From contig NC_134471.1 of the NCBI RefSeq assembly GCF_964194025.1, forward strand, positions 62,434,001 to 62,498,000: a stretch of DNA of 64,000 bases, written 5' to 3'. The position numbers and the translations under genes are program-made. Below, piece by piece: positions 1-43,169 of the stretch; the stretch's first letter is position 1, and each line of letters starts with the position of its first letter. The stretch comes from Convolutriloba macropyga. Its lineage: Eukaryota. The notes under the pieces are model-generated. The model was given only the letters and a program-made list of their open reading frames with translations, did no database searches and was not told the DNA's origin.

Positions 1-383
1 CTCTTCGAATTAGGTCAAATTTTTCGGCAGCACTTGATCGAAGAAGAAGCCGTAAAAATTAAGATCCAGGGAAATATAAAATAATAATGGTACATAAACA
101 GGAGACAGTTGTCTTTTTGGACCGGCCAGTGCTTTTTGACAGTTATTAACTGATTGAAGCCAACGGTTGACTAAAATCGGAACTATTTTCCATTTTCCCA
201 CAAGTGCATTTACTGACCCAAGCTACAAAACATGCGATATTGTATATAGCGCAGTCCCATGTAAACAATAGCACGTGCACCTAAAGGGCGTGAACACCTA
301 ATGCGCACTAAAGTGCCAGAGGTTTGGATAAGAAAAAAATTCGCGAGAACTAGCAACTTGTGTCAAAAAGGAAAAAAAAGTAG

Positions 384-552
384 GGATCTATTCTGTTTCG
401 GATCTATTCGGGTGTGTTTTACGCCCCCCAGTTACAAATTATATGTTGTTATATAGCACGTTACTATGTAAGAAAATTGCACGTGCGCCTGGGGGGGGGG
501 GCGTAAAAAATATAAGCCCACTAAGCTGGGGGGGCCGAAACAGAATAGATCC
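384..552. mobile_element. 169-bp MITE with 18-bp perfect TIRs and an 8-bp TSD (Merlin-like termini)
   Basis: TIRs GGATCTATTCTGTTTCGG (384-401) and CCGAAACAGAATAGATCC (535-552), flanked by identical AAAAGTAG at 376-383 and 553-560. GG termini with an 8-bp TSD fit Merlin/IS1016; hAT and P also make 8-bp TSDs. Confidence 0.85.
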
Positions 553-599
553 AAAAGTAGTTTAATGAACATAATTTGCTGACGTCCTTATCGAAAAGT

Positions 600-1450
600 G
601 TCTAATGACTCATCAAGTCAGTATTATTGGAGAGTTGATAGAACAGAAAGCAGCATTATTAGATTGCTAACACGGGTTATTTTAGTGTTAATTGACAAGT
701 TTTGCTCGCGATACCCAGAAGGTAATTATCAATCCAACTAGAATTCGCTCAGTTATTTTTTTGTGAAAGGACACGTTACGAATAGGCACCCTAATAGTGA
801 GGTAAATATACTACAAGGGGGACATGGTGGGAAGGACCCAAGTATGCATCGAGTTAAATCTCATTGAGTCAGCCTGGTATAATATCCTTGCATGTGATAC
901 TCACATCAAAGGGATCTGTGTTTTTCTTCCCGCAACGTTTTGTCACTTCAACAGCCTCCTGCATGTCCGCATAATGCAATTTGAGAGCATAATCCAAATT
1001 TTCCGTATCATGACTGCTTACGGGCATTCCTTAAAAGGAACATCAATAAATTATGTTTATCAATAAATTATGTTTATAGTTGGAACAAAAACATCCTCGT
1101 TGTATGTTGTTATGAATATCGCCATGCGGCTTTTATCGCCTCGAACAAGTTTTCATGCTCTGGGGCGGAACTGAGCTGTTGAATATCTTCGAGAGGGTGA
1201 AAATAACGTGTAATGTTTTTAAAATGTAGTCAGCTTTTGCCACCACTCTTTTCCCGCCACACATCATACAACAATAATGCCAAAAGGAGTGGCGTAAAGA
1301 AGATAGTCTTATCCCAAACCAGAATTCGACAGTTAGCATCTGGGAACTGCATTATCTGCTATATTGTAAATTACCGTTGCACTACCAGTTTGCTTTATGA
1401 CTAATTGCTTTTCTAAGTATTTTCAATATCAAACTGGACGGAGTTTAATA
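600..1450 (-). mobile_element. Highly decayed BEL/Pao pol fragment (pre-integrase and integrase N-terminal region)
   Basis: Frameshifted minus-strand traces resembling the Pao 'SPF...GR...KHP' and 'FWI...C..CR' segments; weak and heavily interrupted. Confidence 0.35.
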
Positions 1451-2149
1451 CAGATTGAACAATGCGGGTTCTCTTAATGTAAACTTGTTCAATCCGACAT
1501 GAAAACAAATCAAAGAAAAAGATAAATATCTAAGACCTGTTTTGCATAAGTATTTTAACTTAAAAATAGGTTGTGTTCAGTTCTTTGTACTCAAAAATTG
1601 AAATACCAGAGGCTGCAGTCTCAAAAGTTGAATCGCAGCTCAGACAATTTGTAGAAAGAGAACTCAGTAACAAACACTTTACTGCTCAAGAAAAATTTTC
1701 ATTTGTTGCTCAAAAATTTAGCTTCAAAGCCAATATATGTCCTTTCATCCGATAGGAAGATGTAACGTGTTCCGACTGATGTGTTGAGAGTTCTTCAAGT
1801 TCTTTATATACACTGATCCTCCCTCTGTTCATTTGAATTCTCAACTGTTGGTTAACTCAAGATGACGACAGAAAAACGTTACTTTCCATGCAAAATTGAC
1901 ATCATTAATTGTTTTTAACCATATTGAATATCCACCGAATGTTCCAGATTCACGTCAGAAATTTGGTGAAAAATTGACGCAATAAATAGTTTTTAAAACA
2001 ATAACGTAAACCAACGTTTTTGCGTGACAATATATGTCGACCTAATTTATAGCAGAATTTCTATGTACAATAACAGTGGATATTTTAGTTAAAATTGGCC
2101 TTCACACTGCCAGCTCTGTTTTCGAACTTGCACAAAATATTTTTGTTTG

Positions 2150-5100
2150 ATAGTACAAGAGGGAGCTTTACATCTGGTCTTTTGTAGACTCCATAGTTCG
2201 TTCGATCTTTCGTTGATCGAATCACACCATCAGATCCTCCAAGGCTCTCCTTAAGTCGACCAAATTTAAAACACCCTCACGTATCACTATTCTCAATCAA
2301 CCAAACGAGTGGGGTTTTTTTTAGATTTTTGTTTAGTGTAGATCACCACTTCGGCAGATTACTCGAAGTTTACAGAAATCTATCCCAAAGGAAATTTACA
2401 TAAAGTAGAGTTTGACAAAGAAAAATGTCGACAATTGACGCACCCTTCATCGCATAGTAGATAGGGTAGGCAAACAATCATGTTGCTAAACAAATTGTGA
2501 TTGGGAATCAATGCTTCCACGTCAATTACATTCGTCTATTGTAAGTGACCTTGCGCTGAACGTCAGTTCAACAAGACACATCATAGTTGGAACAGCATCC
2601 TCTGTGACCAACCTCTTCCATACTCTTTGAAGAAATGTAGCTGTCCGTGGATTGAACTTTCTTTAACTCCTCGTTGAATTAGATGTTGTGCCATCTCCAC
2701 TTTAGCCCACGCCGCAGAAAACTGTGCAAAAAATTCTTGCTAAGCTGCATCAAAGATTCTTCCATTGTCAGTGATCATTGTTTAGGCTTTCTGTGCATTA
2801 AACCGATTAATTGCAAAAGAGAAATTTCTGTATTCAACTAAGGCACAGCCTCTACATGTACCGCCCTCACCGTTTGACCGCCCTCACCACCCATGTAAAC
2901 AGACAAAACCATTTTTTTATCTTTCTCTCGGCCAATCTTCTTAGTAAAAGGCCCAAAGCAGTCTACCCCATTTATTGTCAAAACTATTGAATACCCTTTG
3001 AGCTCTGCTTTTTCTTCAGTTAACACACTTGTTCACGACTGAACGTCGGAACTTTTGTCTGCCCAGGTTCCGCAACTTTTCATGTTCAGTTTTCTTTACC
3101 TGCTAAGTGCCTTCCAGCTGATTATCTTCGTTCTCAATTTGCAGGACTAACTCAAAAGATTGATTAACCCCGTGCATCAAATTTTAATTACAATGCTTTG
3201 TAATGAATTCCAATAGGATTCTACTTATTCCACTTTTGGCGCGAATTTGTACTTTTTTGTCAAGAAAGGGTTCAAGCTCTTGGATTCTACTGCTTTTCCG
3301 AATTTTTTTCAGCTTCTAGGAACTTCATCTCCTCGGCAAATTGTTTTTGCTGTTCCAACTTCAACATGATTGCTCTTCTTTTTTCTCGTTTCCACTGCTA
3401 CAATAATTATTGTTGGTTTATGTTTGCTCAATTTTTGAATAAATCTTGCCACTGTATTCACTAGCATGTTAACATTTTTGATTTGTTACCATTGAAAGGA
3501 AAACTCTGTTTGTTAGCAGGTGCCAACAAGACTGATGCAGAAATGTACTCTTCAACTGAGGCAACCTAAGTCTCATGTGCTCTGGTTATCCACTTTATGG
3601 TCGCTCTAACAGGCCGGCCCAGATTGCCACTTGCAGTGAGCAGAAACATCAATTGCAGGTAGTGTCTCAGCCACCCGATTGACTACAAATAATTGATGCT
3701 TGCAAGGAGAGCTGTGTTTCCGCTGCAGTGTTCTAGTATATTCTGCTCAATAACTGCTTCTTTCCAGGTAAAGTTTTTTGGCTATCCGCCCTTTTAACGG
3801 ACTGCCATTGCTGAAATTTCAAGCATGGTATTGAAAGAGGTCTCAATTGTGCCACTCCTGGGCCATTCCTGATTACAATTACTGATTCATTCCCACTAAA
3901 AAAGTTTCTTCTTTAGGCTCTTGCCGTGACGACTGACGCGGATATGTCTTCCTCATACAAAGCAAGAAATAGGTGCACTAGCTTTGGCCATTCACTTTCT
4001 TGTCACATCGTCCAGACCGGCCCCGTGAGCCATTTGCAGTGAGCAGAAACATCAGTTGTATCCAGTGTCTTAAGTTTTAGTTTAACTATAAACTCTTGTT
4101 GCTTGCGATGGGATTTGTGTATCTACAGTAGGGCTTTATTTGAGTCAACCCAATAACAACTTTTTTAATTGCATCTCATGTTCCTTGACTATCTAACTTT
4201 CAAACTGACTGCCATTACTGCCACTAGCAGTTCCAAGCGTTTTATTGAAAGATGTTGGATCAGTTCCACTCTGCGTTGTCACATGACCAAAAACTAAGTC
4301 GGCTGATAGGTGTTTTATATGAGACCGTGGATAGGATTTTGCGAAAATCGTCTGTTCTTATGCCTGAGCAAACACAAAAAGTTCTTCTTTGTACTTTACT
4401 GCATTGAACATACTTCTATTGACTGCCACAGACTGGGTATTGATCTGTCCAGCTAAAGATTTTCGCTGAAAATCCCCTTCGTTGTCTCAATGCAGTCCTT
4501 TCGTAGTCCAGAAGTCCTAAATAAGTCGTCTTATAGGATCACTAAACAGAGCAAACAGTCCAATTGTGTCAAATAATGACCATATTGAGTACCTCTGAGA
4601 TATGGTGTTTCAACCTGTTTTTGGCACCGCTACATTCCTAGAGAGACACTCTCATCATTGACAGTCAATTGTACTCAAGCAGTGAAGATCCTTTCATATT
4701 GGGTGCCATGTTAACCTGCTTGTTGTTGCATACCGATATGTAGGCTTCTGGGACTTCTTCAGACACCTCGCTGTTGTTTTTTCAAATTCTAGGGTCAAAT
4801 ACATGTTGCGAGAGAAGGGGTAGTACCTGAATAAAAACTTAAATGGCTTCTTCTGGGGCTTCTACCGGTTTGATGCAACCTTCCACGTAAATGTTGTTTC
4901 ATATTTTTTTTTCGTGGAAGTAGGATAGATTTTTTGATTATTGGTTCCTGAACAGTTCTTACTGGCCGTAGAAAACTCAAGCTAATTCTATCTCGCTCGA
5001 GAACTTGCACATAGTGAAACATCGATTCAATATCAGCTGTCAGGGCTTTAGTTTCTTCATGAAATATGAACATTCTTCCAGTCAACCCATGTAGCTGATC

Positions 5101-8100
5101 AAGTTTCGCTAATAACTTGTTCCTAAGGCAAACGGCTGTGTATTTTGAAGCTGCATTTCAGAAGTTTCTCAATTTTCTAGGTTTTTCTGGTCGCGTTTAG
5201 CTCAGATGGCGTGACAGACACCATTATTTTTCAAACGCACATTTCTGACACGTTAGTCTCTGGTTCATTCCAAAGCGTTGTATCGCTTGCCCATAAATGT
5301 TGTTGTACTCTCTAGCAACTTCTGTAACTGCAGTTGCATTTTATTGTGACTGAAGACGTTGATTTTGGAAGCATAGTTTTCAATTTTCCACCGTGCTTGG
5401 ATTTCCCCAGCAACTTCAACTCAATTGTGCAGGCAAAATGACGAAATTTTTTCCCCTTCATAGGTACACTATCTACCCCTCGTAGCTCTGTTAGGATAAC
5501 GGAATGGCAATTTCATGCCCCTGACTTGTGTTAACATTGGGGTTGCAGCACATAGGCTTCTTGACCAAGCAAGATGCCACCTTTCTTTAAGTTGAGGTTT
5601 TTTTGCAGGAAAATTTCAATAGTTAAAACTTTGCTTCAGCTTCGCTTAGTTGTAGTTTGTGTTTCTGATTGACGCGATTTACGTTTGTGCAGATGCCTTG
5701 GTTGAATGTTCTTTTTATGTAGTCCTTTTATTTTGAGAGGAACTGTTTCGGTCTTCAGATCTTTTATTTTTTGTATGCCAGCTATGTTGAGACCAACATC
5801 GGTGCCTTGGACACTGCCTTGGAACTTTCCTTGCAAGCTTTGTAGGTGCAAGAAAAGTTCCAATGTATTCACCAGTCATTGGGTTCGCTTACCATTGTAT
5901 TCACTAGCCTGCTAAATTTACTGATTCGTTCCCAGAGAACAAAGCCTTTGTAGTTTGTCATCAGGACTGATGCGGGACTTATGTATTCTTCATTTGAGGC
6001 AAGACTGGGTTCAATTGCTCTGGTCATTCACTTTCTGGTTGCTTCAAACAGGCCAAACCTGCTTGCCACTTGCAATGAGCAGATTCACTAGTTGCCTCCA
6101 GTGTCTCAGCCACGCAATTGACTACAAAAATTTGATGCTTGCGATGAGAGCTGTGTATCCACCGCATTATTCTAGTGGAGTCTACTCAATAACTCCATTT
6201 GCTTCTTTCCAGGTAATGTTCTTTGGCTTTCCGTCCATTTAACGGACTGTCGTTACTGCAGCTCGAAACTCCAAGTGTGGTATTGAAAAAGGTCTCAATT
6301 GTGCTACTCTTCGTCAATGCCTGCCTAAATATCCAATTATAATCTCTGTTAAAATTACTTATTACTTCCAACTGAAAAAAACTTTCTTCTATAAGTTTTG
6401 CCATGAACACTGACGCCGATATGGTTCTTCATACGACTATGTGCACTAACTATGGTCGTTCGGTTTTTGGTTACATAATCCAGGCGGACCCAGTGAGCTA
6501 GTTGCAGTGAGCAGACGCATCAGTTGTATCCAGTATTGTAACCATTAGATTGAATACAAACTCATGTTGCTTGCGGTGAAATTCGTGTATCTACTGTAGT
6601 GCTGTAATTGAATCAAGCTAATAACTACATTTTCTTATTTGCATTTCATTTTCCTTGGCTATCTGTTTTTTCAACCGGACTGCTATTATTGCTACTAGCG
6701 ACTCAAGGTTCTTGTTGAAAGAGGTCGCATCAGTGCCACTCTGCATTGTCACATGGGAAAAACTAAATGGGCGGAGTAGTGTTTTGGTTGACAGCGTAGA
6801 TATGCGTTGGCAAACATTGTATGTTCTTATTGTTGAGCCAAAACAAAAAATTTTTCTTTGTCCTTTACTGCATTGAATGTACTTCAAATGACTCCTAAGG
6901 ACTGGGTACTGATCTTTCCAATTCAAAATTTTTGCTGCATCACAAAGCTTAACTTTTTTGTCCCAATGCTGTCCTTTCTTATTCCAGATGCTTTTAAGAG
7001 GTCGTCCTATAGGAACACGGAACAGAGCAAACAATCCAGTAGGGCCAAAAACTGAACATATTGGTGACCTCTGAGGTATGGGCGTTTCAAACTATTTTGT
7101 TTGCACCTCTGAATTCCTAGTGAGATACTTTTATCATTAGCAGTCAACTGTATTCAAGCAATGAAGATCCCTCCATATTGGGTGCCCATTCGACCTACTT
7201 GTTGCTGCTGACCGATATCTAGTCTTCTGGGATTGCTACAGACACCTCGGATTCAGCTTGGTTTCAACTTGCTTCAGCTTGGTTTAGTCATTGTTTGTCT
7301 TTCGGAACGCAATTGATGGTTGTGCAAATGCCTCCAATGTTATTCTTAAGGTAGTTACTTTATATTGAGAGGAACTGTTCCTTTCTTCAGATCCTTCTTT
7401 TCGTGTATGCCCGCTATATTGAGACCAACATCGGTACCTAGGACATGGCGTTGGATTTTCATTTGCAGACTTTGATAGATGATGGAATCTTCTGGTCCAT
7501 TATCGAGGAAAAAATATGTGTTCAGCTTGTTACCACCGCTCTATATTGCGACGAGAACAATCAGAAAAATTTTATAATTTATCTACTATGGTCAATTGTT
7601 GCTGCGCTAACTTTGACTGGATTGTTTTTTTTCTGAGAGCAGCATTCTAATGCACTTCTCTGTACATCCATATATAATGCGCGCGTTGAATTAAAAATCT
7701 TTCTGTGAAAATCCTTTAACTAAGCAGTTGTCTTTGAAGCCTTCCTTCCTAACTGCTGCATACCGATCATTCACAATCTTGTTCTTGAATAATGGACAAT
7801 TCCTATTTTAATTAGTTCCATCAGCTTGCGGATAGTGATCGCTCTGCATTTGTTTCGCTTCTTTCACATTTGAGCTGGTATTGAAGCTCGATATCGTCGA
7901 GTTCTTCTTGGATTGTGTTTCTTCAGTGTTTTCCTGTTGCAAGGGATGCAACCCTTCAAGCAAGAATGCCATTTTTTCTAACATTTTTCCATGCCGAACC
8001 AGATCAGGCCAGTGTTCACCATTTTCGTCAAAAGGAGGCACCACATATTTTTGAGTTAACTCACCTACCGTTATATGTAAAGACGAGCTTGATTGCAGAT

Positions 8101-8500: not shown

Positions 8501-9469
8501 TTAAATCGATTGACGAACAAGGGCGTGAATTTCGATTCCGTGAGAAGCGACTATGCTTGTTTGGTTCAGGGCTTGCATAAAATTGAAACCGGGACCTTTT
8601 GGGCTTTGGTGAGCTTGTTACACCGCAGGACCAAACAGATGAATCTGTATTCCAAGGGCTCCAGTTGATGATTGATTAGCATACTCAATAGTGGACTGGG
8701 AATGAGCTTCATCTTTTTATGTAGAGCCGCATTTTTTATTTCGCGGCTTTTTTCCAAGCAGTTCGAGAAAAAATCATTGAGTTCGAAGTTATTTTCTGCA
8801 GTGTTGAACAACAAGCTTTGAATGTTTTAAAATTTTGGAACTGATATATAAAACACAAGCACTATAGAGAAACTAGTACTGCGGAGAACTATGTCCTTTA
8901 AAACCTGCTTGTGAGTGTTCTAACAAAGCAACCATGCCTCGACTAGTTAAAATGCGTACATGTAGAGACTATAACAAGAAAGACTCTCAGTCACAATCAA
9001 ATCACCTCTTTAACTGTTGTTCCACTATCATTCAATTTTCCAATGAGCTGCAGGTTTTCTGATTGACGTGCGACATTTGCTACCAAAACACCGTGCTTCT
9101 GTATGTCCTAAATTTTAATCTAAAATATAAATTCTTTATGCAATTTTATTATTTCAAAATGCTCCTCACTAATGAAGTTTTGCTTGAGTCCTATTTGCTA
9201 ACTATCTTTAAAAAATAATAATATGAACTGGACTCAAAAAGACCCAACGGGGCTCAGACTATAACGATCACTACTGTATGAGATGAATAATGGTGAACCA
9301 TTGGTTTTCACCGCGTTCTCAGTTTTCTTATAAAAAAATTTTCTTACTTGGGTTTTAACCTGTTACCTCTTGTGTGCCTTCAACTTCCTATTCCACTGCA
9401 TCAACTGTCACCTAATTCTTTGATACTTCTCGTGAATATAAATCAGATTCAATAAACGTTGGAAAGCAC

Positions 9470-9770
9470 ATGCTGTGAATTTTTGTTAGAAATGTATTGA
9501 ATTTTGCGTTGAATGTTTGTACGAAATGCGATGAAATGAGGTGAATTTTTTTCACCGCCTTCACACAATTTCTTACATTAACTTACCGCAAAAGTTCACG
9601 TGGTGAGTTCTTGCAAGAAATACGGTGAATTTCGGGGTGAATTTTTTAAAGAAATGCGTTGAAATGCGGTGGAAATTTTTTTCTTCGCATTCACAACAAT
9701 CACCGCATTTCTTACAAAAATTCACCGCATTCAACTCATTTCTTACAAAATTTCACCCACAAACCTCGGC
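9470..9770. repeat. Palindromic MITE-like element built from GCGGTGAA/TTCACCGC motifs (copy 1)
   Basis: Alternating direct and inverted GCGGTGAA and TTCACCGCATTTCTTAC motifs, ending in aaacctcggc; homologous to 14945-15171. Confidence 0.7.
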
Positions 9771-9777
9771 TTACCGT

Positions 9778-12700
9778 CCAGGATGAAGTTACCGACTCAT
9801 GACAGGTATCGGCCAGACTGACATGTGGATATTGGCCAGCCAAACGGACCGAAATATGAGTATTGGCAAGAACGAACAGACCGAAAGGTGAGTACTGGCT
9901 TCAATGAACAGAGCAAAATATGTTTTTTGGCCAGACAGAAGAGAATAAAAAGACCAAAAAGTTGTCATTGGCCAGACCGAACAGACCGAAATGTTGGTTT
10001 CGGCCAGAACGAAAAGACCGAATTGTGAGTACTGGCTAGACCAAACAGAGCGACATATGGGTGTTGGCAAGAGTGAACAGACCGAAATGTGGGTTTTGGC
10101 CAGAAAGAACAGACCGAAATGTGGGTATTGGCAAGAAAGAACCGACCGAAATGTGGGTAATGTCTAGATCGAACAGAGCGAAATATGGGTACTGGCCATA
10201 CTGGAGAGACCGAGATGCAGTTATTTGCTAGACCGACCAGAGACAAATATGGTTATTGGCCAGACTGAACAGACAGAAGTGTCGGTATTGACCAGACTGA
10301 ACAGACCGAAATGTGGGTATTGGCAAGAAAGAATCGACCGAAATGTGGGTACTGTCTAGGTCGAACAGAGCGAAATATGGGTACTGGCCAGAAAGAACAG
10401 ACCAAAATGTGGGTAGTGGCCATACTGGAGAGACCGAGATGCAGTTATTTGCTAGACCGACCAGAGACAAACATGGTTATTGGCCAGACTGAACAGACAG
10501 AAGTGTCGGTATTGACCAGACCGAACAGACCGAAATGTGGGTATTGTCAAGAAAGAACCGACCGAAATGTGGGTACTGTCTAGGTCGAACAGAGCGAAAT
10601 ATGGGTATTGGCCAGAAAGAACAGACCAAAATGTGGGTAGTGGCCATACTGGAGAGACCGAAATGTGGATATTCGCTAGACCGAACAGAGCGAAATATTG
10701 ATATTGGCCAGAAAGAACAGACCTAAATGTGGGTACTGTCTAGGCCGAAGAGAGCGAAGTATGGGTACTGGCTATATTGGAGAGACCAAGATGCGGTTAT
10801 TCGCTAGACCGAACAGAGCGAAATATGGGTATTGGCCAGAAAGAACAGACCTAGATGTAGGTACTTTCTAAGCCAAACAGAGCGAAAAATGGGTACTGGC
10901 CATACTGGAGAGACCGAAATGCGGTTATTCGCTAGACCGAACAGACCGAATTGTGGGTATTGGCCAGAAAGAACCGACTGAAATGTGGGTACTGTCCAGG
11001 CAGAAAAGAGTGAAATATGGGTACTGGCCATACAGGAGAGACCGAAATGCAGATATTCGCTAGACCGAACAGAGCTAAATATGGGTATTGGCCAGAAAGA
11101 ACAGACCGAAATGTGGATACTGTCTAGGCGGAACAGAGCAAAATATGGGTACTGGTCATACTGGAGAGACCGAAATGCGGATTTTCGCTAGACCGAACAG
11201 ACCGAAATGTGGATACTGTCCAGGCAGAAAAGAGTGAAATATTGGTACTGGCCATACAGGAGAGACCGAAATGCAGATATTCGCTAGACCGAACAGAGCT
11301 AAATATGGGTATTGGCCAGAACGAACAGACTGAAATTTGGGTACTGGCTAGACTGAACAGAGCGAAATATGGTTATTGGCCAGACTGAACAGACCAAATT
11401 GTGGGTATTGGCCAGAAAGAACAGACCGAAATGCGGGTATTGGCCAGAAAGAACCGACCGAAATCTGGGTACTGTCTAGGTCGAACAGAGCGAAATATGA
11501 CCATTGGTCAGAAAGAAAAGACCAAAATATGGTAGTGGCCATACTGGAGAGACCAAAATGCGGATATTCGCTAGATCGAACAGAGCGAAATATGGGTATT
11601 GGAAAGAAAGAACATACCTAAATGTGGGTACTGTCTAGGCCAAACAGAGCGAAATATGGGTACTGGCCATACTGGAGAGACCGAAATGCGGTTATTCGCT
11701 AGACCGAACAGAGCAAATTGTGGGTATTGGCCAGAAAGAACCGACTGAAATGTTGGTACTGTCCAGGCAGAAAAGAGTGAAATATGGGTACTGGCCATAC
11801 AGGAGAGACCGAAATGCAGATATTCGCTAGACCGAACAGAGCGAAATAAGGGTATTGGCCAGAAAGAACAAACCTAAATGTGGGTACTGTCTAGGCCGAA
11901 GAGAGCGAAATATGGGTACTGGCTATACTGGAGAGACCAAGATGCGGTTATTCGCTAGAACGAACAGAGCGAAATATGGGTATTGGCCAGAAAAAACAGA
12001 CCTAAATGTGGGTACTTTCTAAGCCGAACAGAGCGAAATATGGGTACTGGCCATACTGGAGAGACCGAAATGCGGTTATTCGCTAGACCGAACAGACCGA
12101 ATTGTGGGTATTGGCCAGAAAGAACCGACTGAAATGTGGGTACTGTCCAGGCAGAAAAGAGTGAAATATGGGTACTGGCCATACAAGAGAGACCGAAAAG
12201 CAGATATTCGCTAGACCGAACAGAGCTAAATATGGGTATTGGCCAGAAAGAACAGACCGAAATGTGGATACTGTCTAGGCGGAACAGAGCAAAATATGGG
12301 TACTGGTCATACTGGAGAGACCGAAATGCGGATTTTCGCTAGACCGAACAGACCGAAATGTGGGTATTGGCCGGAAAGAACAGACTGAAATTTGGGTACT
12401 GGCTAGACTGAACAGAGCGAAATATGGTTATTGGCCAGACTGAACAGACCAAAATGGTGATACTGATTAGACCGAACAGAGTCAAATATGGGTATTGACC
12501 AGACTGAACAGACCGACTTGTCGGTATTGGCCAGAACGAACAGACCGAATTGTGGGTACTGGCTAGACCAAACAGAGCGACATAAGGGTGTTGGCCAGAG
12601 TGAACAGACCGAAATGTGGGTATTGGCCAGAAAGAACAGACCGAAATGTGGGTATTGGCAAGAAAGAACCGACCGAAATATGGGTACTGTCTAGGTCGAA

Positions 12701-13928
12701 CAGAGCGAAATATGGCCATTGGTCAGAAAGAAAAGACCAAAATATGGGTAGTGGCCATACTGGAGAGACCAAAATGCGGATATTCGCTAGATCGAACAGA
12801 GCGAAATATGGGTATGGGAAAGAAAGAACATACCTAAATGTGGGTACTGTCTAGGCCAAACAGAGCGAAATATGGGTACTGGCCATACTGGAGAGACCGA
12901 GATGCAGTTATTCGCTAGACCGACCAGAGACAAATATGGTTATTGCCAGACTGAACAGACCGAAGTGTCGGTATTGACCAGACCGAACAGACCGAAATGT
13001 GGGTATTGGCAAGAAAGAACCGACCGAAATGTGGATACTGTCTAGGTCGAACAGAGCGAAATGTGGGTATTGGCCAGAAAGAAAAGACCAAATTGTGGGT
13101 TATGGCCATACTGGAGAGACCGAAATGCGGATAATCGCTAGACCGAACAGAGCGAAATATGGATATTGGCCAGAAAGAACAGACCTAAATGTGGGTACTG
13201 TCTAGGCCAAACAGAGCAAAATATGGGTACTGGCCATACTGGAGAGACCAAGATGCGGTTATTCGCTAGATCGAACAGAGCGAAATATGGGTATTGGCCA
13301 GAAAGAACATACCTAAATGTGGGTACTGTCTAGGCCGAACAGAGCGAAATATGGGTAGTGGCCATACTGGAGAGACCGAAATGCGGTTATTCGCTAGACC
13401 GAACAGACCGAATTGTGGGTATTGGCCAGAAAGAACCGACTGAGATGTGGGTACTGTCTAGGCAGTAAAGAGCGAAATATGGGTACTGGCCATACAGGAG
13501 AGACCGAAATGCAGATATTCGCTAGACCGAACAGAGCTAAATATGGGTATTGGCCAGAAGGAACAGACCGAAATGTGGATACTGTCTAGGCCGAACAGAG
13601 CGAAATATGGGTACTGGTCATACTGGAGAGACCGGATTGCGGATTTTCGCTAGACCGAACAGACCGAAATGTGGGTATTGGCCAGACTGAACAGACCAAA
13701 GTGGTGATACTGATTAGACCGAACAGAGCCAAATACTGGTATTGACCAGACCGAACAGACCGAAATGTTGTTATTGGCCAGAGCGAACAGACCAAAATTG
13801 CCATTGGCCAGAGGGAAGGGGCAACCCAAAATTTATCCAGACCAGTTGATTGGGTCGCACCGGACCCCCCTGTCCGCGACCCGTTTCGATCTGGACAATA
13901 CCTGTCTTGGTCGCGGAATTCACCCTGG
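9778..13928. mobile_element. Non-autonomous TIR element enclosing a ~4-kb higher-order 32-bp satellite
   Basis: Left end CCAGGATGAAGTTACCGACTCATGACAGGTATCGGCCAGA aligns with the reverse complement of the right end CCAGGGTGAATTCCGCGACCAAGACAGGTATTGTCCAGA (~40-bp imperfect TIR). A short relative of the right end lies at 33435-33599. Confidence 0.65.
9800..13812 (+). repeat. Tandem array of ~125 32-bp monomers (consensus ~GACCGAAATGTGGGTATTGGCCAGAAAGAACA) with higher-order repeats
   Basis: Strict 32-bp period. The diagnostic variant CCATACTGGAGAG recurs mostly every 128 bp, with some 224/96/288/448-bp intervals. Near-identical ORF-track peptides recur at offsets of 384, 767 and 1151 bp. Confidence 0.95.
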
Positions 13929-14284
13929 CGAGAAAAAACTTTTTAGCATACATTGAGATTTCATATTTTGCCACCGTTTTCAGCAAAAACAATTTCATTT
14001 AGCCGATAACTTGGTTTAGTTAATTTCTTTACTTAAAATTTCATGCCAAACCTTCTCACGAGAGGGGTGGTATGAATCACCAATTGAAGCGCTAATCAAC
14101 AGTTAATATTTCAACTCCCACAATTATTAATCCAAGTGACTTTATGTAACTAATTACCAATTAGGTTTTTTTCTTTTCGGCCTAATCAACATGTTATAAT
14201 GTATCACCAAAAACAGTAAGAAGTGCCAGTACTTATACCCGCCTAAAAATACCGTCTAGTAAGTATTGATTGCCTGAAACATAC

Positions 14285-17200
14285 CAAAAACTCTGTAAGT
14301 ATGACGTCTTTTTTTCGCGTCCTTTTTGCCACAAAGATCCAGAACTTCTTCTTTCGGTCTTCGGACCTTTGGCATCTCTGCCAGTGCAATGTCGTTCATC
14401 TTGTTGGAACCATTCAGTTTATATCTGAAACGCAGAGACGCACGAGACATCAAAAGTGCCTAGAAATTTCAGGGTTTTTTTGTCATTCTAGCATTATACA
14501 GCCCCCTGTGAACATAATTGAGGGGCACGAAATAATCGGATTGGGGTTTATAATGGGAAAACCAATTATTTTTTAAACTGAGTAAAAGAAGAATATACGG
14601 GCTCCGAATGTCAAAAACAAATAACTCAATAACTTGATTATTGGCATTGAGCTTGTGCTATTAGTGCATGCATAAAAAGAATCTAGGCATAAATAGATTA
14701 TAAAAAGTATGTTACAGCAAGAGTTCAAAAACCTAGATTGGGGATGGGTCGACTTTTTGCTCTATCATATCGAAAAATGGTTCAAAAATAAAGTTTTTTT
14801 GATATTTTCACTACTTTTGCCTGCTTTCAACACTTTCCAGTTTCATTTTCATCCAACTGATTATTTTGAAAATTGCAAGTATAATTTGAAGGAAGATTAC
14901 AACAAGATCCCACATAATTTAACGCTTTTTAGCGTTGACACCTAGGCCTGGGATCGAATAGCGGTGAATTATTGTTTTTCACCGCATTCACCGCATTTCT
15001 TACATTAATTTGCCATAATAGGCTATGCGGTGAATTTTTGTCAGAAATGCGGTGAATTTGGTGGTGAATTTTTGTAAGAAATGCGGTGAAAAGCGGTGAA
15101 TTATTTTTTTTCTCCGCTTTCACCGCAATCACCGCATTTCTTACGAAAATTCACCAAAAAACCTCGGCCGGGATATAATAATTAATATTTAAATGCTTCG
15201 AAGCCATGTGAAGTGAAAATGTAAACGAAAAGATAAAATTAACCCACTTCGAGTGCTAATTGCCAGACATGAAAATTACATTGCTCCTAACATTTAAAAC
15301 TGCCCTGTAAACAAAAAAAATTCATTTAGAACTGTCAATCACTGTCAATTTATCTTTTATCCATAAAATTGGGGAACTAAACTTGTATGCTTAACCTAGG
15401 TTAAACTAAAGGCGTTACATATAATCGACAAACTTGCCAAATCTAATAGAGATGTGGAAAAATTAATCTTGATCTTCTCCTTTTGTGAAACATCAGACGT
15501 GCACAGGCATAATTCAACGTCCTCTCTCCGAGGTCCCAAAATTTGAAAAATTTTAAAAATTTTATGCGCTCCAGGTGCGCTCGAGATTGTCTGTTGTCAG
15601 TCCATCCCCGACCAAAACTACCTCAGATCAGACTCAACCCAGATCACTGCCAAGAATAGCGAGCGACCAGAGCTCAGACTCAAACCCCCGCTATTTCTTC
15701 ACATTCTGATGTTCTCGAAATTGCTACTGATACAGTGTTGAAAAGATTCTCTGCGCTAAGATAAATATTTATTTTTCACTTATCAGTATTTGAAAATCGA
15801 TTTGACGTACCGCGATACAAATTAAATAGCTGTTCCTGAGAAATTAGACAATAACAATTTATGAAAACTGTTTGTAAGAGGATTTTTTTCTTGTGCAACA
15901 GAACGTTAGCTGCTGTCTTAAAGTATTATCTTGGAAGGTCAAACTTAAGTACCGTATTGGTCTAGTAAATCTTCGAAGTTTCGGCCAAGGTGGTCAACCT
16001 CGGTTACGCCACGAGAAAAACGATATCCTCGTGAAAATTAACTTAAATTTTCATTCAATTGATCACTCAGACAAAACTGAACGAAAACTTGACTGACTAA
16101 TTAGCTCTCAAAAATCTTTCGCAAGGCTGATTAAGAATTAAAAGAACAAATCTGAATAAGATCTGAAGTAATCTTAAGAGTCGCACGAATCAAGTATAAA
16201 GTTGAATGAAACAGATTTATGGGACAACTACATCTTCTCTTTTTTTTCTTTTTCTTTTCAATATCTCTTTTTATTGTTCCGACCCCTCTTGAGGAGGGAG
16301 GAACTATATACTCAAATGGGTTTTTTTGTTCAGACAATTTTCGCCGATCGATATATTCATCGTAGTGTGTTGAGACTGGTACCATTAGAAAGCCCGTCCA
16401 GCGTAGAATATGGAATCAAAAAGATTTTTTTTATTTTTGTTTTTTACAGGGAGTTATCGAGGTTGAAACTTTTGAGAAAATAGAGTGAATTCCGTTGTTT
16501 TTATTCACATTTTCCGGAATTTTCGCCTAATATTTCGTCAATTTTGCTAAAACTTCTTAAAAATTTTAAGAATAGTGTTGTTGATTTTATTTTTAAAGAT
16601 AAAAAATTATTGTTGATTAATTTGATTTATTTTTTGTCAAAAATTTGGGCTAAACATTTCAAAATTCAGCCTTGTTCCACCAAAAACAGCACAAAATAAG
16701 CTCATTTAGTCCACTTTCATTAAATGTGCCGGAAGTACACAGCCAAACAACACTAATACAATCTTTGTAGATCAAAAATGGGTTATTCCTCTTCAACTTC
16801 TGTTGAGAGTGCTCTGTAATTAAAACTTTGCCGTTTTTTGCTAAATTTACTCGTTGATTATCAAATACGCAGAATTTAGTTTTGAGTGTTCCTAAGTGTT
16901 CCTAATGGAGAATAAGCTTTAGCAGGGCTGGTTGTTGACCAATCTTGGACTGTTAAAATCCAAAAAGGAATTGGATTGAAATCAGTCGGTCTTTCTTTAA
17001 ACAAAAATTGATGTTTTTTTTTAATAATTAAAGAACAGAACAAATCAAATCAAAGCTCAGGAGTGATAGATTCAATTGGCATCCTAGGCAGCTCCAAGCT
17101 ATTGCATTTAGTTTTTTAATTGAAAGATTATGATCTTTTTGGGTTTTAAAAATAATTGATGTTTAATTAAATAAGGGCTTAATTAACTTTTCCTCTAATT

Positions 17201-26489: not shown

Positions 26490-26680
26490 NNNNNNNNNNN
26501 NNNNNNNNNNNNNNNNNNNNNNNNNNNNNNNNNNNNNNNNNNNNNNNNNNNNNNNNNNNNNNNNNNNNNNNNNNNNNNNNNNNNNNNNNNNNNNNNNNNN
26601 NNNNNNNNNNNNNNNNNNNNNNNNNNNNNNNNNNNNNNNNNNNNNNNNNNNNNNNNNNNNNNNNNNNNNNNNNNNNNNNN
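26490..26680. other. Assembly gap (run of N)
   Basis: 191 consecutive N. Confidence 1.
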
Positions 26681-33434: not shown

Positions 33435-33599
33435 ATGGGGTATGGGCAAGACCGAACAGATCCAATTCAGACATGAGCCAGACGGAGCAGCGCGACCGAA
33501 AATTTCTCCAGACTATGAGCTGGGTCACATTGGACCCCCTGTTCAGGACCCAGGTCCGTCTGATCAATGCCTGCCTAGAGTTGAGGACTTCATCCTGGG
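33435..33599. mobile_element. Isolated right-end fragment of the satellite-carrying element family (9778-13928)
   Basis: CAAGACCGAACAGA...AAAATTTCTCCAGAC...TGGGTCACATTGGACCCCCTG...CTTCATCCTGGG resembles 13750-13928; its reverse-complemented end CCCAGGATGAAG matches the left end at 9778. Confidence 0.6.
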
Positions 33600-35122
33600 T
33601 TGCTTTAATTTGTTTCTCAAGACTAGATAATTAGATAATATGTAGCTGCATTTTATTTTTGCTGATGCAACAACAGCATTAACTGCGTTCATGCTTCCAT
33701 TTTTAAATTTTACTTATGCCTAGTGAAGTAAACAATGTTGTTTACTCTAGTCTATTTTCTAACTCATTAATTGTGAAGAGATTTCTCCTTGCGTTATTAC
33801 GCAAACAGTTGTTTTATATAGGGTTTTGTTGGTTCACAGATGACAAATTGGGATCTAGCAAAACAAAAAAAATTAAAGCGCACAGATTTTCTGCATTTCT
33901 AAATCCGGGTTTTGAAAGTCTCGCTTCACTAATATAGCTGCAGTTAGTGAACTAAACTTATTTCAAGTATTGAATCTCAGCGTTGCGTGAGCTAGTTTTT
34001 TTCTTGTGTACAACACTTTTATAAACAAGCATAATTTATTTTCAGAGCAATAGTTATAACCAATTATTTCGTTTAACTCCAAGCTATACGGAGCGTATAT
34101 ATAACAATTGAATTGCTTAGCATAAATTCACCACAATCCAACTTCTAGAACTTCTAAAAAACAGAATTGTTTATGAAACAGATATTTATTGAATTGAAAA
34201 TGCTACTGTTTTGCAAAATTATACGATAGAAAAACGTAAAATTCTGAGCAAAAATGAAAATAAAAATTCCCGGAGGTCGTTGACAGAGCATATCAGCGTT
34301 GAATCAGTCTAAAGGCATAATGTTTTTTGTGGATGTCCAGTACTCTTTTCATGTCCCAATTTACACTGTCTAGTCTTGATTTTTGATTAGAACTGAAGGC
34401 ATGTAAAATAGTTTGTTCCAATTAACTCTGCAATTCGAACTTCCGCTTGATTACGTGTAACGATTAATTTGTGGAGAAAATTGTAACCGCTGATGTAAGT
34501 GGACTTTGTGATTATTTCCTACAAACTAGCGTAAGTATAAAGAGCGTGTTTAGCTTTAGAAGTACAGCATAATTATAATCAGACTTAATTTCAGCGCATG
34601 AGTAGTTTTCTTTTGAAGACTACACAGGATAAAGTTAACGTGGGTGGATTGACTTACTTCATTTTAATCATAATGAGGATAAACTGCGCATAATTTGAAA
34701 CACACATGATATGCATCGTTTCAGAAGTGAAATCGAGTTTTACTATTGATGTATGCCGATTCTGCGCTGAATTGCTCTGAGGCCCGCGCCCGGCCACAAA
34801 AAAAACATATCTGGACTGCAGCTTTGTTGTTTTCGTTTGTTTGTTTTCAAATTTAGAAGATTGGTTGAAAAGTTCCACTGAGAAAAATCCAGCAAAATTA
34901 GTGAAGTAACAATATTACCCAGAGTGCCGGTGATTTTTTAGGAAAAAAACAAACTGAAAAATGCACTAGAAGTGATGCTCTACAAAGTAGGGAGAACGGC
35001 TGTCTCCTCATTTTTTGTTCTTGTCCTGCGGGAATTAAATATGTCGCATTAGAAACAGTTTTTGTTTTGACTTTTATGAACAGTTGGGAAACAACACATA
35101 TTGTTAATGTGTTCGATATCCT

Positions 35123-36018: not shown

Positions 36019-36979
36019 ATTGCATTGACCAAATTTTTCCAGGTTACTCTTTAACCACGTTTCAGCCACGTTTCAGAGAAGCCATAGTTACAGTACAAAA
36101 CAGTTTTGTTAACAAGTCTGCTTAGTAAAATTTAGCAATCTGCGTTTTTCAGGTTGTAAGCGGAGCGCTATATTGTGACAGTTTTTATTCGATGCGTCAT
36201 TGCTTTCTGGAAGATTTGCAAAAGTTTCTCAGTATGAGCAGCCGCAGTTTTCCTTTTGAATTTACGTCCAAATCAAAAATCTAAATCTAAAAAAACCGCT
36301 CGTTTGGATGCTGAAATACTCTTAAGCCAAACAAAACATCATTAAAAATTTTTTATTCTAAAAACAACACTTAGGTTCACTTTTTTGTTTCTGTCAAGAT
36401 TCTAATAACAAAATTTCGCTTTAAATAAAATCTTGTCCACAGAAACTTTGATTCATTTCAGCCAATGAGCCTACCTTAATTTCTGGCACAAACTCGTGAA
36501 TTACATTTAAATCAACAAAGATTTGCGTTGCCTCAAATTGACACTAATAGTGAATAATGAGTTCTTGTCTGGTGTCATTTTTACTTTTCGCGTCTTTTTA
36601 TTTCAATAACGCTGATGCGACAGGAAACTTGACTAAGCGGTTATACAATGGGAGGCCACTCGGGGCACATGAACGAGCCGATTTCTTTGTTACGGTGGAG
36701 TTGATCAAAGATGCGCTCCTCATATCACCCGAGGAAGTTATGGGTAAATGCGGCGGGGTGCTGATATCGGAAGTTCACGTTTTGACTGCTGCTCATTGCG
36801 TCTACATTGACCCAGATGACGAGGAATATTATCAACACTGTTAGTGTGATCAGTGCCCAATTGCTGTTAATTTCACTTGATCTTGCGAGTAAAAGATTCA
36901 GTGGTTCTTAAAGATTGTGTGATATGCTAATTGTTAGGCTTCACAAGTAAAACAATGGGTAATGTCGACCCGTCTATGC

Positions 36980-36984
<5 letters not shown>

Positions 36985-37018
<34 letters not shown>
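36985..37018. repeat. (TA)n microsatellite in intron 1 of gene 2
   Basis: About 17 TA units. Confidence 0.95.
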
Positions 37019-37022
<4 letters not shown>

Positions 37023-37749
37023 CTAGTGAAATTGACATTAAGACTAGTCGGTCGGTCCCAATTACCACTCGCTGACAGCTTGAAAATTGCTCCCGGAATA
37101 AATAATGCGTGCTTATCTTAAGAGAATCTTTCAAGATATCTTAGCGGATAAAAATCTAGGCAAATTTTTTTTCTATGACCCAGCAAACGAAATCTCCTTT
37201 TATATATGAACAAAATTTGAGAACTGAAATTTCAGCAATCAAGTAAGTTGTAAGGCACATTAGCTTCAGCTTCTTTCGTTTTCAAATGAAAATTGAACCA
37301 AATTCTCACCTCTGATTTCAAAAAGGTCTTTTTTTCAAACTTTCTGTTTCTAAAGCGCAAATAACGTGGTGAATTTTAATTTCTAGGCTGATTTTCAGTC
37401 AAGCTATACTACCAGTTGTGATTGAAAAACATTGATTGACCTTCAACTCTGCTTAGACCATCTGCGAATTACGCTGGAGGATTTCACACGTAGGGTACAC
37501 AGACGAGAAATAGACAAAACAAGAAGGTTTTGGCCTCACGAAGAGTAAGTGAATGGTAGTTCATAACACATTCTGTGCACACTTCCGCAATTTTCACCAA
37601 TTTAAATTTAAAAAAAACAATTGTTGTTTTTGCTCTCATTGTAATTGCTTTCTTATTTTGGACGGCCACACTGAATGATGCAAAGAGGTATCTCTATCGG
37701 TGGCAAAACACAGCTTTGATTTTGCTATTAGGGCAGACACTATGTTGGC

Positions 37750-39420
37750 TCCTTTTACAGCCTTAAGGTATGAAGAGTTAGGGCTACTTATTTCTGCGCT
37801 CGAAGTAGACATACCTAATTCTCTCAGAATAGCCGATTCAGTAATATATTGACGGAAAAGTTCAATTATGACGGCGTTTAATATCGTTAACACCAGAGTC
37901 AAGGTATTGAGAATACCAATGGCGTGCTCAACTAAAAGTTCAAGACTTACTGAAGTCAGGCGTGCAAGCGCTATATTAAAGAGAACAGAATCTTCTCAGT
38001 CTCTGATTGGCTGGAGGCGTGCGTACAGTATTTCATCTGCTACCACCATCCGGGGTTAAGAGTTTTTCACCCAAAGCTGTAGAACGTAGCTTAATACGTT
38101 GAATATGTCATCCTCATCAAATATTGGAGTTGGTGACTTGTGTCGTCTTCTGAGGTCCGTGTCTACTGAAGTTGGTGACTATAGTCGCCAGTAAAGGATC
38201 ATTATCTTTTCACTTGCAGAGTCAGTAAGAGTTCCCGGTGCAGAATTTGCTGGCCAGCAGCGTCACTCCTGTAGGGTATCCGGCTGTCTCCCACTGTCAT
38301 GTAGTGAGAATTTGTTCCCAGCTGGGTGGAAATTTGTAGTCTGTAGTCTCTGAGTTGGTTGTACAGGGAGATTTTAGGTCATCTCAATCTGGTGCAGGTC
38401 TTTTTCCGATCGGATTTACCAGCTTACCTTCTTGTTAGAAGCCAATTAACCCTTTAAACTTTGTAAGTATATTTCTTATAAATTAAATTAAAATTTAATC
38501 CCCTTTAATCCATTATAAAGTTTAATCCGCTTTAAACTTTATAAGTTTAATTCCTATTGGTTCTACCAGAGAAAAGAAGAAAAAGAAATTTTCCTTAGCT
38601 TCAATTTGAAGGGAGGAAAGCAAAATGGTAGAAATTGAGAGAAAACGGAGATATAAAAAAATACAGGGAAAAATTTACAAAAACAAACGTTTTGTAAGTT
38701 TACAGGGAACTGTGTCTTTTTTAGGAACAGTGACCCTGGCAGTGGGACTGTGCCCATCAGCAGTGCTGAAACTCGAAGTCAGGGGCCCGATTATCAGGGT
38801 CCCTAAAGAAAGCGAGCAATTCATTTTCCGGGGCCAGAGAAGCAGCAAGAGCCCGAGAATACAGATCGTTGTTGCAATGTGGCTGCATCGCCATTAGATG
38901 GTTCAAAATCTGCTGTTCAACGGCTGACGGCTCTCAGTTGGCCAACTTGTTTTGCGGTCCAATTTCTGTAGAGGATGTTTTAGGTATGTCCATACATACA
39001 TTTTATGGCGCCTGCCTCCTGTACACAATGTGGATACTCAATTAGGACAAGAATAGGGTTGTACGACCATGCATACAGGGAACAAAGAGGAAGTAGTTCT
39101 CAAACAGATAAAATTGCTTCTTTGCTGCACATAGGGTCAATGATAAAGGTGTAGTTTAGATAAAACGGAGATGTATTTTTCTTATTAACAAGTTGAAGCT
39201 GCGAGCCGATATGCATCAGGGGATTCGTTGAAGTGATCTTGTACGAAGAGATAGTTGTGATTGATCTGAAGCATCTTCATACGATTCATTTTATTCGACT
39301 GATTATTTATATCCGTCTGTGTGGGATGTAAAAATCCGAACTGGAGTTAAAATGTGTCATTCTTCTGGTAGACACGATAGAGAGTCGTGTTCTTCGCAAA
39401 ATTCGTGTTGAGGTAGTCAT
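37750..39420 (-). mobile_element. Possible very old RTE-like LINE RT fragment, interrupted by an AT-rich insert at ~38440-38700
   Basis: Higher GC than surroundings, with weak frameshifted minus-strand traces resembling 'KLR.Y.A.V', 'D..RR', 'YG.P'. No intact motif. Confidence 0.3.
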
Positions 39421-39429
39421 GCTGGGGAA

Positions 39430-40430
39430 ATGACCTCTGATGAGACCAAGTGCAACGTACGGTGTGGTATCAGACCAAAATTACGGGGCCTTGACTTTGG
39501 TTTGAGCGCACAATAGTATGATCAGAGGTCACTTTCAGATGGTGATGGTCTAATCAGAGCTCTTTTCCGTATGGGTTGGTCTGATCAGAGGCGGATTCAA
39601 GCGCACATTAGTCTGATCAGAGACGATTTTAAGCGCAATTGGGTCCGATCAATTTCAAACGGATTTTTTTTTTCTAATTTTCATTTTATGTCTTTTTGAG
39701 CGAGGGATGTTGGCTCTGCCAAAAAGCAACAAAAAATCAGCATTCTCATCAGAGACACATCTAGAGTCTGTTGGCTTTGATCAGAACTAAACCGGTCCAG
39801 CTGAAAGAAAATGCCCATTCCCTAAAGAGGAAATTTTGATTCACTGTAGAAGGCGACGTTTTTTATGGAAAGATCTCTGAGTCCATCCATTGAGTCAGAA
39901 ATATGCAAAAATTGTATACTAATTAAAATTTTGCTGAGCAGTTGGGTTCTATGTTTACTAGCAATACTTTTGGAATGGTGTTTCCTTTAATTTAATACTG
40001 CAAACATATCTTAATGATATGAATATGTTATAGCAAAGTTGACGAAGTTGGTTCATAGTGAAAACTATTCACTGATCATACTATTTCGAGCGCAATTGAT
40101 TTTGATCAGAGGTTATTTCGAGCGCATAATAGTCTGATCAAGAGTGACCTTTGAGCTCACAATAGTCTGATCAGAAATTTTGAGCGCACAATCGTCTGGG
40201 CGATGGTTTGGGTTTGGTCTGGGCCATAGTCGCACAATTGTCTGGACATTGGTCTAATTTTGGTCTGATCAGAGGTCATTTCCGTCTGTCAGGGTCTGAT
40301 CAGAGACAGTTTCGAGAGCGGACTTTAGTCTGATCAGTGGATACTTTGGTTTTGGATGGTCTGATCAGAGGTTACTTTCGTCTGGAACGGTCTGATCAGA
40401 AGTCACTTGCGGATGGCACCTCAACCTGGG
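39430..40430 (-). mobile_element. TCTGATCAGA-array CCC...GGG element, copy 2 (inverted relative to 27688-28888)
   Basis: Ends CTCAACCTGGG at 40430. Core segments (TGTTGGCTCTGCCAA, CCATTGAGTCAGAA, AATACTGCAAACAT) are reverse complements of 28255-28570. Left end eroded. Confidence 0.75.
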
Positions 40431-41811
40431 ATGTCAGCCAATTTGCATTGAATTTGGGTTACTAAGGTCATTGTTGATGTGCAATCAATTTCTTATAATA
40501 ATTCTGGTGCTAATTTTAGATTTGACGCCAAAACTAGCTGGATGTACGATATTGCACTGGTGGAAATGAGGTTAGTTAGGAGACCAGTACAAGACTCAAT
40601 TCGACTGTGTGCCAAACAAGAGAAGAAGAGGAAACATCCGTTTAATTACAGAGTCTACGGTAAGTCTTAAAACAAAACATCTGATGACACCAAAAGCAAA
40701 AGGGATGACTTGTAATACCCCTTCCCCCACCTTCGTCCTAAATGATTTTATTCACATTAACACTTAGATTTTCATCCAATCTGTCTTTACTGTAATTATC
40801 GGTTTTCTTTGGTGCAAAATGATTTTCTGTTTAAGCAGAAAATTCCTGTTCAGATAGTGTCACAAGAATCGACAAAAACGAATTAAAATATACAAAGAAT
40901 AGACAAAAACGAGTTTAAACATAAACCAAGGCAGCTTTATTTTAGCCAACTATGCATAGCTTCTTAGCAGTTTAGTCTTACCTTGCTGCAAACAGTACAA
41001 TTACTAGTAAGTTCAATTTAAATCTTTGTGAGGAAACTTTTCTCGTGCTGTTTTCAATTAACTATTTCTAAAAAAGCCGTTTTCCAAAACTGCAAATGAA
41101 AAAAAATGTTCACCTTTTGCTTTAGATCAACATTGAGTTTAATAGAAAAATTTCCTAAAAAGTGCAAAAACTTTTGAACATATGTTTCGTTTGCGAAAAA
41201 ACTAGCTGTGGTCAGGCTAGAATTCTATCAAAATGCGGACAGTTGTATGATTTATTTATCAAGAGGTAGTCGTTTCCCAAAAAAGATCACTTGATTGCTG
41301 TGAAAGCTGAATTCAAATGATTGGATTGAACATTCGTTAAACGTCGTCAACTGCAGCAATCAGTTATAATTTGTTTTGCTAGGAACAGACCTAAAAAAGA
41401 AACAGAAAAAGACCACCGTTAAAAGATCCATAAGAAAGCCAAAAAGAGTATGAAAAGCCGATAAATATAGAAAATAGAAAAACATTAATGACCATTTGCC
41501 ATACTTTTGAAGAATGGACCTTGTACTCAACGGAAGGAAACCAAACAATTTTGCAAGTATTTTTTTGGATAGCAAAGTAATTTAATGAAAGATGAAAACG
41601 CATTAACCAGCACTGACTTCCTAATATTACAGCGACCTCTCCATCATTTCGAAGGTTTCGAAAGTTTTTGAATAGTTTTTTGGTTTTGCTTGGAATCTCT
41701 CTACGTTTTTCCAAAGTCTGCAACTTATAGGTCGTTGTATTACCATTTCATAACAAAAAACCTTTGTACTGTTTGTCATCGACTTCCCGAAAAAAAGTGA
41801 GAGCTGGCAAA

Positions 41812-42001: not shown

Positions 42002-42274
42002 CCCTTATTCAATAACAATTTTGGCACCCAACTTAACAGCCTTTGAAACCACACCTAAAGCTAAGTTTTGCTTTAAAAAACATTTCACAATGAGCTAGAC
42101 GGATGTGCACCATAATTTTTTTATCAATGTTTCAGAATATCCCCAGATCAGAAATTAGACTTGTATCAAAACACTCTGACTGTGGTGGGGAAACTACATA
42201 AAAAGACACAAAAAAACAAATAAAAAGATTGAAACATTCAAAAATTTTTTGATATTTAGTTTCGCATTTTCCTT

Positions 42275-43150: not shown

Positions 43151-43169
43151 GTATTGATTTTTTCCGCTT

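Follow-up and report, generated by a model that had tools for sequence, protein, structure and literature searches.

A non-autonomous CCC...GGG transposon copy in Convolutriloba macropyga with a 4-kb higher-order array of 32-bp monomers that probably expanded in place

Animal CACTA-like elements of the TRC type have CCC tips, 2-bp target duplications, and a transposase of the Transposase_21 family (PMC1636069). The connection between transposons and satellites is already well documented in plants, insects, and molluscs and, because variable internal repeats that seed larger arrays are known (PMC3879986; PMC4079207; PMC8978399), the locus described here opens no new question. It lies in a stretch of 64,000 nucleotides from the acoel Convolutriloba macropyga (NCBI RefSeq assembly GCF_964194025.1, contig NC_134471.1, forward strand; C4:62,434,001–62,498,000), which is referred to in its entirety as the window. 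Positions 9777–13929 of the window hold an array of 32-bp monomers between inverted termini. We read this segment, with a probability of roughly 0.8, as one old, probably immobile, non-autonomous cut-and-paste transposon copy, the array of which expanded in place. As a case of satellite-like DNA that arose within a transposon, the array is clear but unremarkable.

The window copy is bounded by decayed terminal inverted repeats. The 5′ repeat (9777–9822, plus strand) agrees with the terminus of a dispersed family (see below) at 38/46 positions, and the 3′ repeat (13884–13929, minus strand) carries a 1-bp deletion. Both tips carry a mutation at their outermost base (C reads T at the 5′ tip, and G reads C at the 3′ tip), which gives TCC...GGC. 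When 9777–9822 is compared with the reverse complement of 13881–13929, ~37/46 positions are matched, with two 1-bp gaps, in agreement with an original prediction (made from the sequence alone) of imperfect inverted termini of ~40 bp. The window termini are ~83% like the family consensus (~17% diverged). Enclosed between them are the 32-bp monomer array (9831–13830, plus strand; ~124 monomers), which is co-oriented with the motif in the 5′ terminus, and a unique 3′ subterminal segment (13831–13883, plus strand), found by genome search and alignment to be common to all family copies. The total length of 4,153 bp takes the window copy beyond miniature size.

The genome searched comprises 1,175,981,408 bases (1.18 Gb) in 4,694 scaffolds. 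A query from the 3′ end (13796–13928) yielded 581 candidate copies; all 40 scored 3′-end matches among these candidates stop at or before window position 13928, and the closest (C5:61039869) reaches query base 136. The 46-bp family terminus has 523 matches at ≤3 mismatches (267 forward and 256 reverse, vs. none for the reversed control), and at least 100 matches genome-wide are perfect; therefore, the family is young and recently mobile. A paired 5′ terminus was present within 1.5 kb in 20/29 sampled 3′ ends. Among these 20 pairs, the flanking C...G of the CCC...GGG tips is seen in all 19 scorable copies, and a 2-bp target duplication stands just outside the tips in 19 copies (the end of the 20th was not located). 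The duplicated dinucleotides vary (TA in four copies; AT, TT, and CA in three each; TG and CT in two each; AC and AA in one each). The original prediction of a non-autonomous CCC...GGG DNA transposon, which had been made to depend on whether such ends are paired elsewhere in the genome, is thereby upheld, as the paired ends enclose arrays of variable length and are flanked by duplications.

Copies of the family are 476–1,493 bp in size (median ~1.1 kb), have no long reading frame, and number in the hundreds. They are thus short, non-coding, and of high copy number, with inverted termini and a target duplication, as is characteristic of MITEs (miniature transposable elements with inverted repeats). 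The number of monomers in the sampled copies ranges from 1 to 21, with a median of 10. In a canonical copy (L022), the 46-bp terminus is followed by ~440 bp of closely spaced subterminal repeats based on GGCCAGAC, a 270-bp AT-rich unique center, nine 32-bp monomers, an 89-bp unique segment, and the inverted terminus; all internal motifs are co-oriented with the 5′-terminus motif, and only the 3′ terminus is inverted. Deletion forms that lack the center and have target duplications are L002 (476 bp), L019 (485 bp), and L027. The minimal forms (~480 bp), L002 and L019, are reduced to an array and a 3′ subterminal segment between the two termini, and in L019 the 5′ terminus is fused in register with a monomer, as would result if the terminus motif had recombined with the array. 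The window copy is laid out exactly like these minimal forms, except that its monomers number 124 and not ~10.

The 32-bp monomer is homologous to the terminus over the inner 20 bases of the latter, and its core (GGCCAGACCG and neighboring bases) has an identical counterpart in this inner part. This homology supports the array as an expanded subterminal motif, as had been proposed for the locus; furthermore, because the homology is to the terminus itself, the monomer was generated and not captured. Near-consensus monomers number 2,419 in the genome (~77 kb of the 1.18 Gb; none in the control), and the unit is a dispersed transposon-borne minisatellite rather than a classical satellite. The window also contains a solo 3′ end from an older related copy (33435–33600, plus strand), in which one or two monomers and the subterminal segment precede a terminus that ends in CCTGGG and has 9/46 mismatches to the family terminus. 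A relative of one end had been noted at 33435–33599, and it is confirmed as a homologous 3′ end; a matching 5′ terminus was not found for it within the window. Elsewhere, at G000 (C1:71729799–71736238), a run of perfect monomers spaced ~1.35 kb apart closes with a terminus and may be a tandem series of family copies. Two occurrences of one insertion, identical in their flank, lie ~7.5 kb from each other as L058/L061 (C1:76475908–76479801) and L063/L065 (C1:76483434–76488191), with ~33 vs. ~58 monomers, which indicates a segmental duplication and a change in array length afterwards.

Wrap-around alignment to a 32-bp consensus shows ~124 head-to-tail monomers filling 9831–13830 of the window, and periods of 32 and 64 bp are reported by Tandem Repeats Finder over 9967–13798. 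The 32-bp phase is broken only by two 1-bp deletions and one 9-bp insertion near the left edge. The exact GGCCAGAC core is kept in only 8 of the ~124 monomers. Clustering resolves the main monomer types A (n = 34), B (n = 23), C (n = 22), and D (n = 22). A fifth type, E (n = 13), is close to A and is an edge or ancestral type found mostly at the array edges. Types A and E, which are nearest to the family consensus, prevail at the left edge (from 9967) and the right edge, and types B, C, and D in the interior.

The string of monomer types contains 15 ACDB units (4-mer, 128 bp), in three domains, and five AAACADB units (7-mer, 224 bp). Two adjoining 7-mer units of 224 bp each occupy 10255–10702 (plus strand), as judged from the type string and lag identities, and the type string places further 7-mer units at 11375–11597, 12590–12813, and 12942–13164. 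The 4-mer higher-order domains (all plus strand) lie at 10703–11214 (four units), 11598–12365 (six units), and 13165–13676 (four units); the second of these has a 384-bp super-period and includes one arm of a duplication with 98.6% identity. Within the higher-order domains, identity is 0.62–0.70 at lag 32 (neighboring monomers) vs. 0.85–0.90 at lag 128; as in satellite-type higher-order repeats, units of several diverged monomers are more alike than neighboring monomers. Monomer order is non-random, because similarity at lag 4 (6.7 mean mismatches per monomer vs. 8.7 in shuffled order; z = −8.1) was reached by none of 1,000 order shuffles. The same test gave z = −5.1 at lag 8 and z = −3.5 at lag 12, and lag 7 is significant only locally.

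Duplications of several sizes are layered on this order. A 224-bp stretch at 10191 has 97% identity to that at 10415, one 7-mer lag away; the 384-bp period is local (11542–12180, 91–98% identity); and at an offset of 2,527 bp, 9960–10216 is duplicated at 12487–12743 (88–94% identity). Younger segmental duplications are also present within the array (e.g., 10863–11214 vs. 12014–12365, 98.6% identity), and internal duplicates reach 97–99% identity. The original prediction had described ~125 monomers in recurring variants, ordered as 4-mers with 7-mer blocks, a 12-mer (384-bp) super-period, and a re-duplication at ~2.53 kb; all of these were recovered by alignment, clustering, and the lag statistics, the super-period as a local feature. 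With a length of 4.0 kb, the array does not have the extent of long-array satellites (tens of kb or more, forming a substantial, usually heterochromatic fraction of the genome). An Rfam scan of 9300–14400 matched no known RNA family in the array.

The higher-order structure is read as having formed in place, because its variants are locus-specific and the copy that holds them is decayed and has no target duplication. Growth of the array continued long after insertion, given that internal duplicates are 97–99% identical and the termini are ~17% diverged. The simplest history would begin with an old insertion of a minimal terminus–array–terminus element, followed by decay. After insertion, the array monomers diverged into the four types distinguished by clustering. 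Unequal crossing-over or replication slippage would presumably then have enlarged the array approximately tenfold. Amplification of the 4-mer and 7-mer units first, and of blocks of 0.25–0.4 kb afterwards, would account for the layered higher-order pattern.

From the family type, we infer that these elements belong to the animal CACTA-like (TRC/CMC, Transposase_21) group; the basis is confined to the ends and the footprint, as CCC tips and 2-bp duplications are TRC traits. The tips also raised hAT and piggyBac as candidates, and these were ruled out by the 2-bp duplications of variable sequence, which are neither 8 bp in length nor TTAA. The subterminal repeats of CACTA/En-Spm elements have a role in protein binding. 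By analogy, the 32-bp units are putative binding sites for a transposase or an accessory protein. With only two 1-bp slips in 124 units, the strict 32-bp phase (approximately three helical turns) could itself be a constraint; the family has the same polarized design, and its arrays could serve as phased landing pads and the kb-scale arrays of dead copies as protein sinks, although we consider this idea speculative and improbable. If it were true, sinks formed by dead copies would titrate the transposase or accessory protein and damp transposition, amounting to a self-generated control of copy number.

The original prediction went further in treating the locus as a mobile satellite cassette. 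In the strict sense, this would mean that the array was already long and of higher order at insertion, and that arrays of kb scale travel between the termini. Moderately expanded arrays do occur in apparently complete copies, namely, L027 (16 monomers of 32 bp and triplicated 5′-type subterminal repeats, with both termini and a CA duplication) and C1:76484746–76487519 (~58 monomers, with both termini). However, the family moves with ~10 monomers, and the 124-monomer array is specific to one decayed copy that shows no target duplication; none of its higher-order variants is found at another locus, the 384-bp unit having 87–100% identity only within its own array and ≤79%, over 384 bp, elsewhere. 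The contrast between near-identical internal duplicates and diverged termini also places growth well after insertion. The other expanded arrays, found on C1, C2, and C3, have 59–113 monomers (1.9–3.7 kb, the window array of 4.0 kb being the largest seen), and those of kb scale are mostly plain 32- or 64-bp repeats that usually lack a 5′ terminus. This holds for the five fetched whole (L070–L074), which are mostly of the plain type: the unique 3′ segment stands beside the array in 5/5 and a recognizable 3′-side terminus in 4/5 (it was not detected in L072), a 5′ terminus was seen in 0/5, and four far ends (all but that of L072) run into unrelated sequence. The cassette claim is therefore not supported in its strict form, which we judge to be unlikely.

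Chance assembly of the locus in the genome, with two independent ends, or one end and a pre-existing 32-bp satellite, coming to face each other, would explain why no target duplication is seen at the window copy and why both outermost bases differ from those of the family, and solo 3′ ends that could contribute to such a composite do exist (e.g., 33435–33600). Against this, the order, orientation, and spacing of the parts are exactly those of the minimal copies L002 and L019, and those of the 2,419 near-consensus monomers that were inspected all lie in or beside such elements, with no free-standing satellite seen; a composite origin is thus highly improbable. Similarly slight is the chance that the array length or the higher-order pattern is an artefact of mis-assembled repeated reads. 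The assembly was built from PacBio HiFi (high-fidelity) data (66.5 Gb; 8.21 million reads; ~8 kb mean; PMC13650328), and the library was of the ultra-low-input, amplified type, from DNA sheared to ~10 kb, with a contig N50 of 0.19 Mb (PMC13650328), all of which could favor such errors. Nevertheless, HiFi reads of ~8 kb should span the 4.15-kb element, and in short-read contigs of two samples the junctions (9730–9997 and 13854–14400) were reproduced with 0 differences at single-copy depth, as were several unique pieces internal to the array. In addition, the duplicates show graded divergence (88–99% identity), unlike collapsed or stuttered assemblies. Among the short-read data, a run labelled as a different organism (run X5, organism B) yielded a 229-bp contig identical to the locus-specific 10869–11097, at a depth of ~5, with none of the unique flanks. 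Either a slight carry-over from one sample to another or an array shared with a close relative could account for it.

Several points weigh against reading 9777–13929 as a single CACTA-like insertion that expanded in place. The window copy has no visible target duplication: when its tips are read as mutated CCC and GGG, the flanking dinucleotides are CG and GA. As the outermost bases are both non-family, the status of the copy as a single insertion rests on its layout and on sequence homology. The total array length is as assembled, with the short-read support covering the junctions and internal pieces. The superfamily assignment is indirect: Transposase_21 (PF02992) is abundant in the genome, with 726 candidates, 73 matches, and intact open frames of ~1,000 amino acids in many cases, but among the matches listed for it and for the terminus no two lie near each other, and an autonomous element with these ends was not found there. 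The putative binding role of the 32-bp units rests on analogy. Lastly, most other kb-scale arrays are without a 5′ terminus, so that a different route, starting from broken copies, may have produced some of the large ones.

The element lies near a trypsin-like gene on the minus strand (blocks 21746–21429, 18833–18771, 15640–15560, and 14399–14307). This gene and an inverted paralog on the plus strand (36581–40634) have four exon blocks in common, in collinear order, and the His (TAAHC) and Asp (DIAL) motifs lie within these. The distance from the last shared block (14399–14307) to the element is 379 bp. In a piecewise exon comparison, neither a catalytic-serine motif nor further shared exons were detected in the window for either paralog. 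The original prediction had raised the possibility that the element truncated the first gene; however, the paralog at 36.6–40.6 kb does not have this element, and a catalytic-serine motif or a further exon downstream was likewise not detected for it in the window, so the missing part is not attributable to the element, and nothing else ties it to the insertion. Both paralogs may be truncated or non-catalytic genes. Downstream of the second paralog are tandem arrays at 42272–43152 (a G+C-rich unit of 75 bp) and 43209–43584 (a 104/27-bp unit). Their position relative to the gene mirrors that of the element at the first paralog, and their sequence is not related to that of the 32-bp unit; clear inverted termini could be found for neither. 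A tblastx similarity that suggested a paralogous copy of the array at 42.3–43.6 kb was dismissed, as the repeat there is a different one of 75 bp and the similarity reflects base composition.

Directly upstream of the element is a palindromic, foldback-like MITE (9470–9760). Its short-read word depth (~195,000 vs. ~40 for single-copy flanks) indicates thousands of copies, and Rfam gave only two sub-threshold microRNA-like matches to it. Insertion of the element into this MITE, considered as a way to recover the target site, was rejected because the MITE ends at ~9731–9750, before the element. Protein fragments of BEL/Pao-type retrotransposons flank the protease pair (45233–48540, plus strand; 1–7100, minus strand), and an assembly gap of N lies at 26490–26680.

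The locus offers a clear and readable case of a subterminal motif of the (putative) transposase-binding type seeding a tandem array that later acquired higher-order structure. Every intermediate stage is found in one genome: mobile copies with ~10 monomers, minimal forms, plain arrays of 60–110 monomers, and the differentiated 4-mer/7-mer array. To our knowledge, acoels are a lineage with almost no repeat annotation, and the family adds an acoel to the animals with CCC-tipped CACTA-like elements.

Compared with described systems, the family shares CCC-start termini, a 2-bp repeat, and terminal repeated motifs with SmTRC1 of Schistosoma mansoni and its relatives in Tribolium and Aedes (PMC1636069). 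In contrast to TRC elements, it is non-coding and only ~0.5–1.5 kb in size, and the window copy has lost the outermost C/G and the duplication. Plant CACTA/En-Spm elements, such as Jozin of Chenopodium (PMC8978399), are of the same cut-and-paste type and also have closely spaced subterminal repeats; as in the window, their arrays are located close to the 3′ end and add kilobases to the element, but the monomers are of 171 bp and read as captured, the duplications are of 3 bp, and the tips are CACTA (PMC8978399). The bivalve MITE DTC84, of the pearl-like type, likewise has a "cassette" of variable internal repeats with ordered variants and a putative 2-bp duplication; it differs in that it is of a pearl-related type, has a fixed AA as its target, and holds five core repeats at most, and a higher-order expansion of 100 monomers is not described in that paper (PMC3879986).

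In Drosophila virilis, internal repeats of the non-autonomous foldback transposon Tetris likewise seeded satellite-like arrays of kb size (the TIR-220 satellite; PMC4079207). The Tetris repeats are of 220 bp, lie in long foldback termini, and were amplified in beta-heterochromatin (PMC4079207), whereas the 32-bp units of the window family stand between short termini, on a gene-bearing chromosome arm. Centromeric alpha satellite is far more distant, with megabases vs. 4 kb of array and a 171-bp vs. a 32-bp monomer, and the window array bears no sign of a chromosomal function; what the two share is solely the mode of amplification, by which neighboring monomers are ~62–70% identical and higher-order units 85–98% identical.

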